The notes beneath the pieces are model-generated. The model had not been told where the DNA came from, did not search any database, and saw nothing but the letters and a program-made list of their open reading frames with translations. From Dimorphilus gyrociliatus (taxonomy: Eukaryota; Animalia; Annelida), in assembly GCA_904063045.1 (NCBI GenBank), contig CAJFCJ010000019.1, positions 1,565,700 to 1,629,699 on the forward strand: a stretch of 64,000 nucleotides of DNA. The letters are read 5' to 3'. Below, piece after piece: positions 21,052-32,160 of the stretch (position 1 is the first letter of the stretch; every line of letters begins with the position of its first letter). The position numbers were made by a program, and so were the translations under genes.

Positions 21052-21520
21052 TATTAGGAAAAAATATAGGTTATTGACAAATTTTATTTGCTATTTGTTG
21101 TTACTGTTTAAAATGAATGAACTCTATATAAAATGATAAAGAATTATAAAAGTCTATATACTAGTTATATGCAGTTTGGGTTATTAAAAAGTTAAGCATA
21201 TAAAAACAAGTATTAAGTAATTAAACAAGTACAATACTACTTATGTTTTATCTTTCGTTCTTATGTAAAACATCCTTATAAGTAATGAAATTAATACTGT
21301 TTTAATTGACTGATTACTATATACAGTAGTTCAGATTATTAAATAAAGTTGAATTTCGACTTTGGATTGCATTATAATTTTGCATTTAATTACGTTGCAT
21401 AACATGAAATAAAGAGATTACAAGTATTAAATAACAATTTTATAGAAAATTTATTGTTATATTTAAAGAAATAAAGTAAATTAAAATTAAAGAGACTGAA
21501 TAGATACTTTTCAGTTTCTT

Positions 21521-21549
21521 CAAACATGGCTGACAAAGAGCCAATCACG
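21521..21549 (+). promoter_or_regulatory. Probable promoter of the SMG1-like gene (YY1-like AACATGGC and NF-Y box AGCCAATCA)
   Basis: caaacatggc..gagccaatcac, lying between the TARBP1 3' end and the gene starting at 22621. Confidence 0.4.
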
Positions 21550-22620
21550 GTGCGATTTATCAGTTACTGCACGACTACCAATAGGAACTACCTATGCAAC
21601 AAATTACAAAATCACGCTTAAAATATTAAACTTTACATATTAAAACATTGTTTTTATTCTACAATGAGAGCATAGTATTTGGAAGACTTAAAATCACTCA
21701 ATAGATTAATTTATCTATTTCAACGTCTTGGTTTGGTATAAAATAAAAACAGGTTGGAATGATGAACAACTTTTCAGATAGTTTTCATGCTTCTTTTCAT
21801 TAATCTTTATAAATTTGTTACTCTGTTACTAATTTAAAAACGTTCTCTATATTTTTTAATAGATTTTATAACTTTTCCACTAATAATATGTATTTAAAAG
21901 AGCAATTAAGAATATGCAAATAAAGTATTCCATAAAAAGAATATATAGAAATAGTTAAGGGGGGAGGGGGAAAGAAAGAGTATTGTAAGATCATATACTA
22001 ATTTCACAATAATAAAATAGTATTTTATAAAAATTTGACAAAATAACTCATTAGAGACATGAAATATTTAAATAGTCTATTTTTTATCTTTAAATCGACT
22101 AATAACAATAAAATCGAGGATAAATTGCAATTCACTTTATTATCTTTCTTGTTTGCTTTTGGTTACCAAATTTCAGGTGAACATTATAAAAGTTTTATAG
22201 GTATAGATTACCGTTTGATAACACTTTTTTTAGATATAAAGAATCGATACAATAAGCGTGTATAATACGATATTTTTTTAACACGATCGTATTGTCTCAA
22301 TGACTAATCTATTGCGTAAAAAAAAGAGAGAAACTGTTTTTTTATTAACTATTCTACAATATACTGTTTATATTGAAAAGCTATTATAGTACATATTAAG
22401 CTAACTAAAATTTTTTACGAATTTTATAATGATTTACAGTGTTTTTTAATTTTTAATTGATTATATAAATTATTAATATTAATTATATTTTCATTTTTAT
22501 TCAGATATTTAAAAAAAGAAAGAAAGAATTTCTTTTTCTTATCTACCTTTAGGAAGTAATCGTTATATCTTGCATTATCAATATTTACATTCTCGTTAAA
22601 GTTATTGATAGAATTCGATT

Positions 22621-25600
22621 ATGACGGAACAAGATGATTCAAGAAGTAAGACAGAAAATATATATCTGTATAATGAATATAGAAGTTTTAAAATTTATAA
22701 TCCACAGCTCCAACAATATTTAGAAATCCTAGTTCAACTCTATCAACATCTATGAGAACTATGTGTATGACTCAAGATCCTGATTTAAGAGCTGAGAGTG
22801 TTAAAGATTTATTAGCTCTGTTAAAAAAAGGCGAAGATGAGGTTTGCATTTATTTTACTTATTTATAAGAACGATTGGTTATTTTAAAGAAAATAGTGGA
22901 AATTAATGAACTAAGATCGAATGTTGTGCTCTATTCTAAGTTTTAAATAGAATCTTACTAAAATTAAAGTGTTTTGTTGTACTGACATATAAATAATATA
23001 AGATAGATGGCGTTTCGAGTGTTATCATCTTAAGTGTACAAGATCTATATACTTTGTCTACTTTTACGATTATTAATTGAATTTATTGTCATAATCAACA
23101 AAGAGTAAACTTAAAATTAATATTTTTTTTTTGTTTTTATATACAGCAATTAAGCAAATATTCTAGTACCTTAGTCGGTTTGCTGTTCGAATTAAACCAT
23201 AAAGAGTAAGTATTATTATTATTTACTTATCTGATTGTATACTATAATTCCAAGTTTAAAGTATAAAGTATTAACCTTTAAATTACTTTATAATCTGATG
23301 TCTTTTCCATCTTCTCCTACCTGCTAAAAAGAGGTTTTCAAGGTCTTGAAAAAGAATTAGCGCAATGTTCTGGTCTTGTTGGATATTATCTGAGAGAGAA
23401 AGTATTCTTGTAAGTATTTTCCGAGTGTGTACTTGCTTTAATATTATTCGGTTTAAAAGAAAGAGCCTAGAAATATCTATGTTTCCTATCAATTCTACCC
23501 CAAAATCTTTTACGTATGTTTTGGTAACAGTATACCAAAAGCATTAGATTAGAAGTGAAACAGATGAAGAAGTTGATAATTCTAAACCAATAAGATACGA
23601 AGAGGAAAATAAATACAAAATTCTTGACTTCTTAACGCTTACAAACTTTACAAAAACTCTAGAGAAGGTTTGGAAGCGAATCTTTATATCAGTAAACTTA
23701 TTCTAACCGTAGAATTATAAATAATAAACTTAGTAAATACTACAAAAGGAGAAAAAAAAATCTAATCAAGTAAATATGAATAAATAATAGCAATTAGCTA
23801 TTAATATTTGCTACTTTTTACTTCAATAAAAGACTAATAAATTCTATTGAATAGTAACTTTACTAATAGAATTTAAGAACATATTTATAGTTTTAAAAAA
23901 TATTTCAAGCTTTTTCATTTATAGATGAGAAATTTTATTTAATCAGTATATTGGACATAAATCCCTTTATCTTTGTACATTTATATAAATTTATATATAT
24001 ATATATATATAAAATTAAAGTATTAATTTAGTGCAATTATAATATTTTTGAACAGCTGACTTTTTATCTTTTTTTTTCTTTAAGTATGGCGATTATTTTC
24101 GAAAACTAAAATATTTGAACTATTCAATTTTGTAAAATAATCTTAAATACGAATACTGAAATATTATTGATTTTTATAGAGCTATTTTTTAATATTTTTC
24201 TCCTTTTTATTTTAAAGGTATATAAACCTTTGGAAAAGTAAAGTAAGAGCAAGTCAAATGGCGAGAGATTTAATACATTTAGTTGATGCTATCAAAGAGG
24301 TTAAGTATAATTTGCATTTCCCTTTTTTTTTCGTTTATATTATTGTGAATTATTAACAATGATAAATTTGACAAATAGCTTTTAAGAGCTGATGTTGATA
24401 CACGGTATCTGGAGATTGAGAATTCTCAGCAGGTTTATATCATTTTAGTCATATTTCACTTTAACAATAAATATTTCAAAATTTTAAAGAATAATGTAGA
24501 CGATATCTGTAAAACAATATCAACTATGGTGACTACAACTACAGATGAAATTGTCTTTTGCAAGTGTGCCAAAGTTTTTTCAATATTCACAAAAGTCTAT
24601 CCAGACACAATGGAAAAATATTTTAAGGTAATATTTGTTACATATTCATTTATTTACTTACTGATACATGTACATTCTTGAAATTTAGGAAGTAGCGGAA
24701 GCAGCTATTAATTGGTCAAGAAATATAGAATCAAAATCGTTTATAGTAGAGAAAGCTAACGAGCTTATTAGCTGTTTTACTCCATTTTGGAGTAAGGATT
24801 TAGAGTTCAGTTTTGCAACAATCAAAAAGTTAATACATGAATTGAATGAATTAGAGCAGGTAGATATTTCCTTTTAAAATTGACATTCCTATAAGGACTA
24901 TATTTTTACTGTGTATATACTGTATAAATTTATATACATTATATATTTATATGTGTTGTTATCTCAGAAATATTATACCAGTCAAAAATCGGATAATACC
25001 ATTAAACAGTGCGAAATAAAAGATGAGATGATATGCGCCTTCTGGTAAGCAAAAGAAAATATATTACTTAATTAGATTAGAGTAATATTTTCCTTTTCTC
25101 TTAATTTAGTATTTATGGAATACTTTTGGATTGCATAGGTCGATTGATTCCTGATAGTGAATTAAGTGAATTTCTTATTGCCGTAAGTAATATACAGATA
25201 GATTGATGCATCCTATTTTTAAAATACTTGTAATTTAATTTTAAAGATAAACCATGTAGTTTAATTACAAACATAAACTTTTTTCTTTTTGGGCTTAATT
25301 AATTTATAGGCGTAAGATCAATAGAATAGTTTTCTATTCTCTTACTATGCAAATCCTACCTAGACAGTATTTTTAATTAACGGAATACTATCACAATATA
25401 AATTTTTTCTGAAATATTTTATATATCTCTACATATACAGTATATATAAATTTATATATATGCTAGTATGTACATATATAAAAATTTTTTGAAATTATGA
25501 AATTCTATTAGCTTGTCAAATATGTTTTTAGATTATCTTTATTTAGTTAGTACTATAGTCACACTTTTCCTAACAATAGGATAGTGTTTTGGAAGCAATA

Positions 25601-25939
25601 ATGAATGGTTCAACAACGGAAGAGGGCCTATTTAAAATAGGTAAATAATTATTTGTATTATTATAAATTTCATTGTTTTTTTTTATTAAATTTTCATAAT
25701 TAATTTGAAAAAAGAGACTTAATAATTATTTCCCAACAGACGTAGGAATTGAGAATGAAGGAGAAAAGCATGCTCAGGGAAATGATAATGTTACTCTATC
25801 AGAGCAAACAAGTTGCTCAGCCGAAACACAGAATGAAAAAAGAGTATCAATCGAAATCGAAGCTACAGTAGAGGAAATAGTGGAAATGCCCTTTATTAAA
25901 TTAGTAACAATGGAAAGTGACCCTGTATCAGAAGTCTAA
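22621..25939 (+). CDS. SMG1 N-terminal HEAT-like protein lacking a kinase domain (~380 aa, ~12 short exons)
   Basis: Phase-consistent GT-AG exon chain from ATG 22621 (upstream in-frame TAG) to TAA 25937-25939. It includes MTQDPDLRAESVKDL, LEKELAQCSGLV, VFCKCAKVFSIFTKVYPDTMEKYFKEV..W..FTPFWSKDLEFS and ILLDCIG. These recall SMG1 RRLATVKQL, LRQEGACCLGLL, LCKCVK..YPHIF..W..LEPFWVADLAFS and VVRSIG. Homology judged from memory. Confidence 0.75.
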
Positions 25940-28900
25940 TTGTAGAGAAACAACTCTAAATTTTCATCTGGTTATTTTTTGCAGTGCAGTGTGGTGCAGT
26001 GCAGAGCTATATTAGATAAATTATTCCTTCAAAATTATACATAAACATAAAAAATTTCACTGCAAAATTAATATAATTAAGGTATAATTTATTTAATGAA
26101 ATCTTGTTCAAAATGTAAATAATATTTTTATTCAAGTGAAGTAGTTTTTTTTGTTTAAGTTTTGTTTTTGTAAAAAAAAAAATGAATCAATTAAACCAGA
26201 GATTATCAATAATTAAGTAATTAATTAATAAGGATAAAATAAAAAACTCGACAGATTTTCTTAATAGAAAAGATATTTGCTTCATTATATTTAGATAATA
26301 GCATAGTAGGATTCCTTATTTATCATATAATATATACAGTATATAAATATATATACTATGTTTCTATATATAGGAGCAGAATATCTCTATAGAAGTTTGT
26401 ACACCTATACATAAATATACTAATTGATTCATATGGGTTTTTTCCTTATTTCTTAATAAACTAATAGAAACATAGAAGTAATAGGTTTTGTAATTCAAAA
26501 AAGTGCAGAACAATATTAATGTAATGAATTATTAAATATGTTTATAGGCCAATATAGCAATTCGGTAAATTTTAAATATTTAATGAATGTCTTATTTAAC
26601 GTGAATAATTTAAAGATCACGGAATAATTTAATATAAATTACTTTTTCTTTCTTTCACCTTCCTTCTTATAATTTAATTTCTTTTTTACTGGATTGTTTA
26701 CCCAAGAGATTCTCCAATCAATAATATTGTTTATTCCTATCCGAATCTTAATTATCTATCTTGATACGAACCGTATTGAGGAATAATCTATGTTGTTTGT
26801 TTTCATTTTTCTTCCCGTTTTGTTTCTTACCCGAAAATAATTTCCTCTCCTTCATTCTCTAAAAGAGATAATTATTCTCCCTTTTCCCTTTTATCTACAG
26901 TCCTTCCTCTCCCTTCCCATTTAAAATTAACATTTGATAATGATAATGCATTACCCTTGTAGATCTACATTTAGTTGTACATTATTATATTACTAAGAAA
27001 TGAACTGAAGATAAATAGATATTTACGTTTATAATAAAAAGAAAATACACCATATACGGTATATTTTTGTTTTACACCACGTTTCGAAATGATAAAATTG
27101 CCTCTATTTGTCTCTTAAACGATCCAATATTCTTCCGGGAAGGATGGGGTGTGAACACTCGAAATTGGAACTAATAGCATTAGGATTGTAACTCTTGCAA
27201 CATCACGATATGAGAATATCTGGCGAGCAACTTTTACAACTATTTGGCCTATATCTATTTAAATATAATATAAAATATTTATGATACTATGCGTATTATT
27301 GTATATATAGTATTTAAATAAGAAGAATCTAAACATTTATAGTTTATATTACGTAATTAAATGAAGAAACGATGATCATCAAGAAGACATAATTGCAATA
27401 AATTTTAATAGATAACTCATAATTAACGTTTCTTTAAAATAAAGGAAGGAGAAAAGAGAACAAAGGATAATTCAGCCAATGTTATTCAATTAATTCTCCC
27501 TTTATTATTAAGCTTAAGATCATCTAACCTTCTCTTTTTCTCCCCCCGCCCCTCTCTCTCTCTCTCTCTCCTTCTCCATCTATCTATATATTTGTATATA
27601 TATATTTATCATATAAAACATTATCTTGTAAAAAAAACTAATAATCTTATATGAATCAACAAGGTAAAAAAAATCCGATTTGCGCAGCTGTCGAAAAGGT
27701 TCAAAGCAGATGGTTAAGTCATCCATGAAATATATTTATTATAATTCTCTTTCTTTTCTTCCTAGTTTTTATTTCTCATTCTCTCCCTTCCTCTTTCACT
27801 CGCTCACACTTTCTTCTTCTTCTTAAATTCTATATTTTTATCCAATATCTCTCCAACATTTTTTTCCTATTGATGAAACTGTTATATAATTTAAATATTA
27901 CAACTACCGGTTGCCTAATTAGCTTTCCTGTTTATTTGTTTATTTTTTAATTATTTGCAAACTACAAAGAAACAATGAAGGAACTAAAATTGATGAAATG
28001 TTTGTATTTTTAAATAGAATATTAAATATAATAAGGTTTGTGGAAGAGTAAACGTGATGTTGATTTAATGGGAATCGAAAAAAGAAGGATCAATCAAGAC
28101 TATGTACGCATTTTATCAAAAAAAGATCCCCTTTTATTTCCATATAAATTATATCATCAGTGAAAACTATTATTATAGAAGAAGAAGAGGAAGAAGACGA
28201 AAAGTATATCATAAATTTTTCCGTAAAATCTTCATGTATTTTACTGCTCTTCTCTCAAAATTGTACAAAAAAGATAAAGATAAAAAGAGAGCGAAGAGAA
28301 AGAGAAGAAAAATAATTGATTAATTAATAAAAAAAAGTGAAAAGAAATGAAGAGAGAGAGAGGGGAAAGAAGAAGAGAAGGTATAGGTAGGAAAAATAAC
28401 CGAATTTTCATATTGTCAGTACAAAAGTAGCATAGAGGATATTTAGAGTCCAACCGAATGCATTTTCACTCGTAATCCATACGTTTCTAGTGCAAATCAT
28501 TATTTACAATATTGTACCTTTTGTTCATTGCCGTATTTTTTGCGGTTCGTATGAGGGATGCAAACACTATACTCTATATTTGTATACATGTATCTTTTGC
28601 TGTGTATGTAAACGTATTTGTTATTTATTATATAGCGAATATTAGTCGAGATTTACCATTATGTTTTCTGAAATAAGCAAATAAAAAAAGAGAATATTTA
28701 ATCACTTTCTTACCTTGGCCTTACCACAGAAAGAAGAATCAAATAGTTGATGAACGATTATCCGTAAAACGATGGAGAATCGAAGGAAATCGTTGAAGTT
28801 TTTAACAACTCATACGAAATGGCACATGTTAGAGAACAGATTGTATATAGATATTGACACTGTTCACTTTCAAGTGCCAATTAGCAGGAGTTATATGCTT

Positions 28901-29850
28901 ATTATAGATGAGTCCATAGAAGAAAATGAACGGGTTTTCGATGCAGTTGAATAACTCTGTATATACGAAAAACTTTATTATAAATTATAAATAAGAACGG
29001 GAAACAACGGGATTTTGGGACAAAGGATGAAAATGTGACCGTAATAGCTATATATGAGAAAGCACCTAGTCAGTACAAAACATTCCCGTTAATATAAGTA
29101 CGTACCAGTACAATGTTTATCATTGTTACCATGGTAGCCTAATTATACTAGCGTCGACGCACCCGGTAGGCATATGCAAATTCCTTAGCGACAGCATAAC
29201 CCATAAACTATCTAACGCTTTATTTGTTTACTTTTATATGTTTATAAATAGTCATAAGGTTTAGTATTTCATTTCTCAAATAAGAAACATTTTAATGGAA
29301 TACCGGTCTACATATATAAATATATATATACTCTATATATGCATATATTTATTTATATAATTCTTTATGTATTTATTTAATTCAACACACACACTGGGAA
29401 AATAATGGAGGAGCTATTTAACAATTGTTTCCAGTTCCATTTCGATTTTTTTTTCTTTTTGTATTAAACTTTTTGCCCACATAACTAAAGGCAGCATATG
29501 GTCAGCTTATCCCCATATTAACACTTATATTTAGATTACGAGTAATCTTTTTTTTGTTAGAATTCCAAAAAAAATAAAAAAGTATATTTTTGTTTTTTTT
29601 AAAAAAAATAATTCATTTTTGTATTTTATTCTTTTTGTGGGTTTTTTTAGTTAAAGTAAAACTAATTATAGAATATATATTAATCTATAATTTATATTTA
29701 ATTATATACAGAATATCGTATACAGTATAAAAGAAGAATATATAAGATTGCAAAGAATAGGTGGATTAAGTGTAGAAGAGTTGAAGGAAAGAAAGTGGTT
29801 GATTGATAAAAAAAAAGAAAAGAAACATAAGGAAAAAGAGAAAGAAAGAC

Positions 29851-29854
<4 letters not shown>

Positions 29855-29889
<35 letters not shown>
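29855..29889. repeat. (AG)n microsatellite
   Basis: About 17 AG units. Confidence 0.9.
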
Positions 29890-29893
<4 letters not shown>

Positions 29894-30591
29894 AAAGTTA
29901 TTCATTTCTGTGCATATGTGCCGAAATGAGTTAAAACATTTTACATTTGAATTGGTATACATTATACTTTTCCATTTACAATTTGTACATTTGTTTCCTT
30001 TATTTATCAAAGATTTCCCAAGTAGATTACACTATATAACTATAAGTTACAGCTAATATATATAAACATTAAAAACTTACTTACTTTTCATGCAATTGGA
30101 AAGATAAAAAATGTTTCTATTTTTCTTTTCTTCCAAAAACTCAATATTTCAACCATTACTCTTTCATTAGCTTTATTATAGCTTTATTATAATCGTTGAA
30201 AAGTCTGTACGAGATGTGAAGGAGCAGATGTTCATAAACAAACTGCACTATCTAACTTTTTAATTTATGCTATTTTTATTATAGAACGCATGCGCATTTA
30301 CATCATCCCAGTTCGGCTTATTTGCATATATTGGTAATTTATTATTAATGAAATTAGACTGGACCATTGAGACAATAAATTTTATTTTGTTTTCATGTTC
30401 TATTTTATCTGTATTTTGCTTATTTTGTAATCATTTCAATACTATAATTCAAGTATTATGAATATAATGAATAGTCAAAATTTCATTATATTTCCTTAAA
30501 CGTTATGTAATATAGATTTATTCAATTTTACAGTAGATTGCAGTATTTTTCATTAGAGAAAATAGTCTTTTCCTTTTTTGGAAAAAATGAT

Positions 30592-30616
30592 TGTGTGTGT
30601 GTGTGTGTGTGTGTGT
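30592..30616. repeat. (TG)n microsatellite
   Basis: Uninterrupted TG run. Confidence 0.9.
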
Positions 30617-32160
30617 ATGCGTGCGCTTGAGCGAGAGAGAGAAAGAGAAGGATATTAAGGAAAATGGAAAGATCCGTAATCTTTGCTTATATTGTCTATA
30701 ATGGTAACTCTTAAATAATTCTTGAAATGAATCTCTTTATATACTCTAATAATAACGTTGATATTTTTTACGGCATGGAAACGCCATTTAAGACAATACA
30801 GACTCAGCGGTGCGCTACGACAGGTGCATAGTTCATCATCAACTGCGTGACTGCTGAATTATTTACTTAATTATCGTTAGCTTCATCCTTCAAAATCGAT
30901 TGTAATTTAAACACCAACACCGCTAAGGGTAGACCGTTTCATATACATCCGCAAGCTCATTTCCTAAATGGTTAAGTAAACAGATAAAATGATGGCCCAA
31001 ACAATAACCTCATTTTTTCATTTTTCCCCACTTTCCATTTCCCTCATCTTTTTTTTTTTACATAGAGCCATAAACTTTAGCAAATAGAGAAAGATCGTCG
31101 ACCCTTTTCCTCAATTCATAATTACTCCTTCCTCTTCCTCCTCCACCTCTCCCCCGTTCTGCTTTTCCAAAGTATAAATCGTTGTCAAATCAATTATTAA
31201 CCTTTAATTTTCTCTCCATCTCTTCCTATTTAGAAAATAAAATAATTGAATAGAAAGAATTTTTACATTTCGTTTATTTCGTTTTATTTCGTTTAATCGA
31301 AAAATGACGAAATCGATAAGATCGATTGATAATTTGATGACAATCCCTACTGCGTGCAACTAAGTTTTGATTATTTAATCGTTTTTATACGTGCATAGTC
31401 AATCATCGGTTCAGCTTTGACGAAACAAAACGAGAAAGTAAAAGCGTTGAAGTATTCATGGAATTGTTTCACCCTCAAAGTAGAATGTATAAATATTTTA
31501 ACGTTTCCCTTGCATATATTTTTACCAATTTTTTTGTCTTTATTATATAAATTATATAAATATATTTTTCATATAATGAAAATAAGTTGTAAATTGCATA
31601 ACTTTATAAATATGCATGTATTTTATAACGATAAACAATTGTTTGTTTTTTCTAGTCTTTGTTCTAGTTGTATAGTATGTTTTGCTAAAGAAAAATATAA
31701 TATGATTAGAAAATAAAATCAAGATTTAAACTTGTTAAGAATAATTAAATGATCTTTATCCATTTATATATGATGAAAACTCCTTAGTGAAATTGATCCC
31801 TTATATCATCCATTTATCCAACAGCATTCTAACAACTACGACACTTTTTATCGTCCCAGATTAAATTTTTTGATGGTTGATTAATCAGTTAATTTAAGTG
31901 AAATCTCTGTAATTAACCCCATATTCAATATTCTTTTATAGTTTATCATTACAAGGCAAAGGAAATCAGTTGAAATTTCAATAGTTTTGTCTTTTCATTA
32001 ACCTTCTTAAGAGGCTGTTGCTAATCAACTTTTTCTTGTCTCTCCAATAAACAACATAACATAACACAACAATTGTTTATGGAACAAATTTATTTTGGAA
32101 CAAATCAGCAACGCCATCTACCGATTATAGAACACTGACGTATATAGTATAGTTTTTAGT

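Follow-up and report, generated by a model that had tools for sequence, protein, structure and literature searches.

A short gene in the genome of the annelid Dimorphilus gyrociliatus raises the question of whether the N-terminal helical arch of SMG1, a kinase that acts in nonsense-mediated mRNA decay (NMD), can persist as a gene of its own. The gene lies in a stretch of 64,000 nucleotides (hereafter the window) of scaffold CAJFCJ010000019.1 in assembly GCA_904063045.1, and an earlier reading of the letters alone (the sequence-only reading) had taken it for a truncated paralog of SMG1 that carries the HEAT repeats and no kinase domain. We find that its product is very probably a conserved HEAT module that descends from the SMG1 N terminus and stands alone, with an acidic linker and a C-terminal motif added to it. 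The fuller account, in which a maintained, SMG1-arch-derived gene arose by partial duplication and encodes a non-catalytic binding module, is the overall explanation that we favor, with moderate confidence.

The gene and its relation to SMG1

Joining segments from three forward-strand reading frames between 22.5 and 26.1 kb of the window, whose DNA is AT-rich (24-43% G+C), gives a gene of 12 coding exons with GT-AG introns and consistent phases (Table 1). The coding sequence of 1,152 nt specifies 383 amino acids. This agrees with the sequence-only reading, which had counted about 12 GT-AG exons, about 380 residues and a stop at the same TAA (25937-25939), and the model product is identical letter for letter to DgyrCDS11671 (P0001), a D. 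gyrociliatus coding sequence already annotated on this assembly and scaffold, unnamed and with no Pfam domain assigned. That annotation was missing from the sequence-only reading, as were a second paralog and a conserved S/T-x-V motif at the C terminus, both of which are described below.

The relation to SMG1 emerges from direct comparison with the human protein. Searching all PDB chains with phmmer returned human SMG1 (6L53_A) at an E-value of 1.5e-7 and 34.3 bits, with query residues 15-243 aligned to SMG1 residues 144-369, and a profile built from the gene, its paralog and a fragment improved the E-value to 2.9e-9. SMG1 is the sole significant match in the PDB, the next matches being unrelated enzymes at E about 0.4. 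The alignment is collinear over about 230 residues and begins where the structured SMG1 arch begins. It pairs RAESVKDL with RLATVKQL and LEKELAQCSGL with LRQEGACCLGL (worm and human, respectively), and CKC.K....YP...F..V...W and PFW..DL.FS also align with human SMG1; the motifs that had been matched by eye (R..VK.L, L..E.A.C.GL, CKC.K...W and PFW..DL.FS) therefore line up in the HMMER alignment as well, and an additional "IG" motif falls outside the aligned stretch. On these comparisons we accept that the protein is homologous, remotely but specifically, to the SMG1 N-terminal HEAT region; the homology spans about residues 144-369 of the human protein and probably extends somewhat further.

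A word-index search with the whole protein found the protein itself only, and with exon 8 it gave no candidate sharing enough words; such a search lacks the sensitivity that this divergence calls for, and proteins of ~3,000 aa such as full-length SMG1 fall outside its length window. When exon 8 was compared exhaustively with 1.84 billion representatives by phmmer, the search recovered the gene itself, the paralog, a fragment of the paralog's ortholog and one repeat protein (P0004), with no canonical SMG1 reaching significance, as expected for a 57-aa query at such divergence. P0004, a 227-aa protein in which MSCFETKTELTEKANDV is repeated seven times in tandem, owes its match to exon 8 (E 6e-6) to recurring "EKAN..SCF" words, and we judged the match spurious.

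No kinase part accompanies the arch. Nothing similar to a FAT domain, a PI3K-like kinase or a FATC domain was found anywhere in the window. Pfam gave no match to FAT or to a PI3K/PI4K-like catalytic domain with the whole 383-aa protein or with single exons, and none to FATC, and a profile of four C-terminal tails, run against the PDB, matched no PIKK chain at E <= 10. With these features tested and absent, the protein falls outside the SMG1 kinase family. The sequence-only reading had seen no kinase exons in the 6 kb downstream; indeed no genes are called in 25940-32160, where open reading frames are of low complexity only, and the genes beyond are unrelated. Its description of a stand-alone, HEAT-only product thus holds on both counts, the lack of FAT, kinase and FATC and the homology to the SMG1 arch by phmmer and profile.

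The HEAT repeats are recognizable in a predicted structure. In the AlphaFold2 (AF2) model, 16 helices over residues 11-305 are arranged as helical hairpins, with predicted local distance difference test (pLDDT) scores of 75-92 for residues 150-300, and residues 307-383 form a disordered tail. The model shows the stacked antiparallel helix pairs of a HEAT/ARM alpha-solenoid, its nearest structures are all HEAT/ARM proteins (best match Z 11.9, 162 residues aligned at 3.9 A; ESM Atlas TM scores 0.5-0.6), and about seven HEAT-type helical hairpins are predicted in the product. Generic HEAT/ARM adaptors such as importin-beta, Rix1/PELP1 and MMS19 share the same predicted stacked-hairpin fold but have no sequence relationship to the worm protein, SMG1 alone being significant by sequence. 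Because structure searches do not discriminate among these families, we used them neither for nor against SMG1 ancestry.

Beyond the repeats the protein has the acidic tail that had been noticed in its sequence, with 18 D/E against 5 K/R in the last 78 residues. In four proteins (the two paralogs and their orthologs) an acidic stretch of variable length is followed by a conserved motif of the pattern VEE[IV]..F[IF]K[LI]..., which ends in S/T-x-V-COOH. The C-terminal sequences are …EATVEEIVEMPFIKLVTMESDPVSEV in the window gene, …EAKVEEVVEVPFIKLATMETEPITEV in its ortholog, …SSVVTREEVYFFKIISPDGEKISHV in the paralog DgyrCDS12212 and …SSVVIEEEVYFFKIIAPDGEKVSDV in the paralog's ortholog. Their ends (-SEV, -TEV, -SHV and -SDV) conform to the class I PDZ-ligand pattern (S/T-x-hydrophobic), as a pattern match only. 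The idea that the motif derives from the first FATC helix, left over after an internal deletion of SMG1, found no support from Pfam or from the tail profile searched against the PDB and was dropped. A T-Q site (ETQ) in the tail is kept between the two orthologs of the window gene, and we give it no weight.

Transcription, orthologs and a second copy

The gene is transcribed and spliced. Contigs of two public sequencing runs (X1 and X2) were compared with window positions 21600-27500. Those of X2 lack introns and are thus RNA-derived; they contain one 5′ untranslated region (UTR) intron (Table 1) and 10 of the 11 coding introns, at joints 22645/22708, 22841/23147, 23409/24218, 24299/24379, 24432/24490, 24627/24689, 24859/24968, 25044/25110, 25182/25580 and 25640/25740, all of them GT..AG and all as modeled. 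Intron 3 (23206-23331) is the sole coding intron without an RNA joint, the X2 contigs breaking beside a skipped repeat at 23199-23223, but the annotation includes it, and the ortholog, whose exons have identical sizes, supports it too. The final X2 contig runs from exon 12 through the stop codon to 26144, ~205 nt past the TAA; the 3′ end of the transcript is likely near 26.14 kb, a contig end being no proof of a poly(A) site, and no canonical AATAAA stands just upstream of 26144. A further line of evidence comes from X1, a coral metatranscriptome, in which a 401-nt contig consists of spliced exons 5-9 (window 24273-24859) with zero differences, indicating D. gyrociliatus or a near-identical strain living in the coral or aquarium sample. 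Expression, which the sequence-only reading had named as a check, is therefore evident as spliced RNA in both runs.

The loose ends listed for the contigs are all intronic, at a short AT-rich dispersed repeat, and none stands at an exon border. The repeat (core ATATACAGTATATA..AAAT..TATA) occurs at 24914-24952, 25412-25466, 26332-26373 and 23966-24019, which places copies in introns 4, 8 and 10 as well as in the 3′ flank, and it accounts for chimeric contig ends, "go back" joints and a spike in depth at 25343-25539.

The gene is also conserved in a second species. An ortholog was reached through the neighboring TARBP1 exon on a 30.7-kb contig (L005, run SRR23372228), on which the order B12D-TARBP1 is kept. 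Its twelve exons have exactly equal sizes, all introns are GT-AG, and the stop stands at the same position of a 200-nt last exon; the 383-aa product aligns without gaps at 68.7% identity. The 25-nt coding start (MTEQDDSR) is present in the ortholog too, as is sequence conservation around the 5′ UTR exon (21513-21876). Between the two genes dN/dS, the ratio of nonsynonymous to synonymous divergence, is 0.19 overall at dS about 1.0; split by region it is 0.18 over residues 1-305, 0.25 in the tail and 0.12 across the final 30 codons. Synonymous distances approach saturation and all the ratios are approximate, but they stay far below 1. The comparison across relatives proposed with the sequence-only reading thus indicates purifying selection and not neutrality.

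A second copy, DgyrCDS12212 (P0002, 266 aa), lies on the same scaffold about 2 Mb away and shares 40% identity with the window protein over residues 124-383 of the latter, through to the C terminus. Its exons measure 51, 54, 126, 171, 77, 73, 61 and 188 nt, against …54, 138, 171, 77, 73, 61 and 200 nt for the last exons of the window gene, and the matching sizes and phases point to a duplication at the DNA level. The copy is followed by CSN8 and acyl-CoA oxidase, with no kinase exons. No counterpart of the first ~110 residues was found upstream of it, and its start Met is conserved in the relative (MEGSLIV/MEGNLII; L002:10001-11790), so that these residues, comprising two repeats, are apparently truly absent. 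About 300 nt upstream, a 67-nt block (L002:9641-9706) that may be a 5′ UTR exon or a promoter element is 82% conserved with L003.

L003, a genomic contig from Logan (run SRR23372229), carries the ortholog of this second copy with the same neighbors (CSN8, ACOX and an aminotransferase), the same exon structure, a longer acidic linker and the same C-terminal motif. Over 204 codons of the HEAT part, dN/dS between the two is 0.13 at dS about 1.4. Identity is 69% and 64% within the two ortholog pairs and 32-41% between paralogs, and such clean ortholog pairs place the duplication before the split of the two species. By these sequence comparisons, DgyrCDS11671 and DgyrCDS12212 are a two-gene family that duplicated before the split from the SRR233722xx relative. 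With frames and GT-AG sites intact in two species, spliced RNA and dN/dS of 0.19 (0.13 in the HEAT part of the second copy), the window gene is a real, expressed and selectively maintained gene and not a pseudogene.

Table 1. Features of the gene in the window
Feature	Position	Strand	Description
Coding region	22621-25939	+	12 coding exons
5′ UTR exon	21641-21749	+	spliced to 22502; GT..AG joint 21749/22502 in X2 contig
Second exon	22502-22645	+	5′ UTR 22502-22620, then start codon and first 25 coding nt (22621-22645)
Coding exons 2-6	22708-22841, 23147-23205, 23332-23409, 24218-24299, 24379-24432	+	model and RNA joints
Coding exons 7-11	24490-24627, 24689-24859, 24968-25044, 25110-25182, 25580-25640	+	model and RNA joints
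Helical-repeat region (coding exons 2-11)	22708-25640	+	about residues 15-305
Terminal coding exon	25740-25939	+	acidic predicted-disordered linker, conserved C-terminal motif, TAA
Conserved C-terminal motif, last 26 residues	25859-25936	+	four-protein alignments
3′ UTR, extent reached by RNA-derived contig	25940-26144	+	X2 contig 25738-26144, one letter beyond

The upstream neighbor of the gene is a TARBP1/SpoU methylase gene. Downstream follow, in order, Ferry3 (- strand), TAF10, HMG-CoA synthase, a METTL25-like methyltransferase (- strand), a TCP-1 chaperonin subunit, an MTA-family gene and a zinc-finger gene. Between the gene and these neighbors, four non-coding blocks (26507-26734, 27059-27537, 27986-28098 and 28772-29253) are conserved with L005, their nucleotide identities of 81%, 69%, 86% and 84% being above those of most of the gene's coding exons (66-75%). 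They contain no open reading frame and have no Rfam match; an unannotated non-coding RNA locus or cis-regulatory elements might account for them in what is otherwise a compact genome. Three intronic blocks in introns 4 and 10 (23551-23633, 23988-24079 and 25294-25387) are 72-81% identical to the orthologous locus, the last at 81% over 94 nt, and have no Rfam hit; an Rfam search of window positions 21-32.2 kb gave nothing significant. Related-genome contigs include L005, L006 and L007 (runs SRR23372228, SRR23372216 and SRR23372231), L003 (SRR23372229) and L008 (ERR14224706). They come from one or more relatives of D. gyrociliatus, with dS about 1, 83-85% identity in the TARBP1 exon and the same local gene order, and are useful for comparative work on the compact D. 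gyrociliatus genome.

A proposed origin and its rivals

We propose that the 5′ part of an SMG1 gene was partially duplicated at the DNA level and that this partial copy would then have gained a new terminal exon and been duplicated once more, its product serving as a non-catalytic protein-binding module. In SMG1 itself, the N-terminal arch supplies the binding sites for SMG8 and SMG9 (PMC7334022), where SMG9 docks on the N-terminal HEAT helices through one of its segments and SMG8 through a short one (PMC8592573, PMC12988323, PMC9162471), and SMG8/9 are described in the literature as modulating kinase output. By analogy with this docking in other animals, the most plausible partners of the worm protein would be the SMG9 G-domain segment and the short SMG8 segment, and their binding would lead to competition with, or bridging to, the SMG1-8-9 complex; we offer this assignment of partners only tentatively. 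The C-terminal S/T-x-V could provide a second, independent docking point, PDZ-type or other. More speculatively, and in our view rather unlikely, the protein might act in dinophilids as a catalytically empty "mini-SMG1", whose N-terminal HEAT repeats would sequester or relocate SMG9/SMG8 and whose S/T-x-V tail would tether it, thereby setting the gain of both UPF1 phosphorylation and NMD. If true, it would be an endogenous PIKK decoy made from the kinase's own arch.

Several points weigh against this interpretation. The homology is remote (34-39 bits) and is drawn to one solved relative. At E <= 10, Pfam hmmscan with the whole protein and its paralog returned a spurious "Sterile" match only, and single exons likewise gave no meaningful family, so that the Pfam match to SMG1 anticipated by the sequence-only reading did not materialize and the homology stands on phmmer and hmmsearch against human SMG1. 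Foldseek (PDB), VIA-align and ESM Atlas return generic HEAT/ARM solenoids only and not SMG1, and the AF2 model is weak, with a mean pLDDT of 59 and three sequences in its alignment. To call the gene a paralog of SMG1 presumes a full-length SMG1 elsewhere in the genome. The suggested role as a decoy or scaffold in NMD is extrapolated from the partners of the human N-terminal HEAT region only (PMC8592573, PMC12988323), and binding of SMG9/SMG8 would require their contact residues to lie within the retained ~230-290 residues. Since the second copy lacks the first two repeats, any partner shared by the two proteins must bind the later ones.

Among the alternatives, gene fission survives best, and we consider it unlikely. 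The worm protein would be the detached N-terminal piece of SMG1, assembling in trans with a kinase-bearing remainder encoded elsewhere, and thus a member of the complex and no competitor. A collinear match that starts exactly at the first structured residues of SMG1 is what such a piece would show, and the strong selection on the gene is also in keeping with it. The second paralog, however, lacks the first ~110 residues, the two paralogs have in common an added acidic linker and conserved C-terminal motif, and the sequence has diverged strongly from human SMG1. A shortened paralog, an added tail and this divergence are easier to reconcile with a derived accessory protein than with a part that the kinase cannot do without.

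Two other explanations seem to us very improbable. In one, dinophilids have lost their kinase gene or it has degraded, and the short genes are all that remains of SMG1, kept for an SMG1-independent role. To our knowledge SMG1 is widely retained in animals, which speaks against such a loss. The paper describing the genome is silent on SMG1, as a loss would have it, but that silence reflects no real search, and the gene repertoire described there is conservative (PMC7854359). In the other, the protein is an unrelated, lineage-specific HEAT protein that matches SMG1 by chance or through the composition of its helical repeats; this would account for the missing Pfam match, for the generic solenoids returned by fold searches and for the exhaustive exon-8 phmmer search without SMG1. 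It sits poorly with SMG1 being, out of thousands of HEAT/ARM chains in the PDB, the sole sequence to reach E < 0.4, with an E-value that becomes better when the family profile is used, and with ~230 residues matched in order, including the unusual motifs CKC.K and PFW..DL.FS.

That the gene is the true 5′ end of a full-length SMG1, through misassembly or alternative splicing to distant kinase exons, or else a decaying pseudogene fragment, is hardly credible: the only caveat in its favor is that contigs cannot prove a transcript end, whereas two species and two paralogs agree in the position of the stop, an RNA contig runs through it into the 3′ UTR and no exon border shows a loose end, both loci are followed by unrelated genes on either strand, and dN/dS is 0.13-0.19 with every splice site intact.

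Known systems and significance

Partial duplication of SMG1, the origin that we favor, would set the worm genes beside their parent and two other systems. In human SMG1 (Q96Q15; PDB 6L53/6L54, 6Z3R), the region collinear with worm residues 15-243 comprises the first structured repeats of the arch. The human protein has about 3,600 aa and the worm protein 383, without the middle HEAT region, FAT, kinase, insertion and FATC; conversely, the acidic linker and conserved S/T-x-V C terminus of the worm protein are lacking in SMG1, and its sequence is very diverged. The closest counterparts known to us, the human SMG1P loci on chromosome 16, likewise copy part of the SMG1 gene; they are recent, occur in primates only and are considered pseudogenes or non-coding. 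The worm genes, unlike SMG1P, are old, with dS about 1 between species and paralogs 40% identical, have intact frames and are under purifying selection. A likeness in concept is that of UPF3A to UPF3B, a paralog able to damp NMD (PMC9162471). The shared notion is of a weakened or partial copy of a duplicated NMD factor that might modulate the pathway through competition for partners, which for the worm genes is conceptual only, and the two cases differ in that UPF3A retains the full domain layout of UPF3B whereas the worm genes retain one end of their parent.

Among the papers listed by searches on SMG1 structure and SMG1 paralogs, we found none that describes a stand-alone SMG1 N-terminal gene, and a full-text search found no literature linking Dimorphilus to SMG1. 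The significance of the finding is bounded by a family that appears lineage-restricted, in a non-model worm, remote in sequence and putative in function. Nevertheless, the N-terminal solenoids of PIKKs are platforms for the docking of partners, and we found no described case of one surviving as an independent, conserved gene. If the worm protein bound SMG9/SMG8, it would be a natural tool with which to separate the role of the SMG1 arch from that of the kinase, and an example of a pathway tuned by a partial paralog. The family would also offer a case in which a partial duplicate became a stable new gene, by gaining a new terminal exon with a conserved motif of its own and then undergoing a second duplication.

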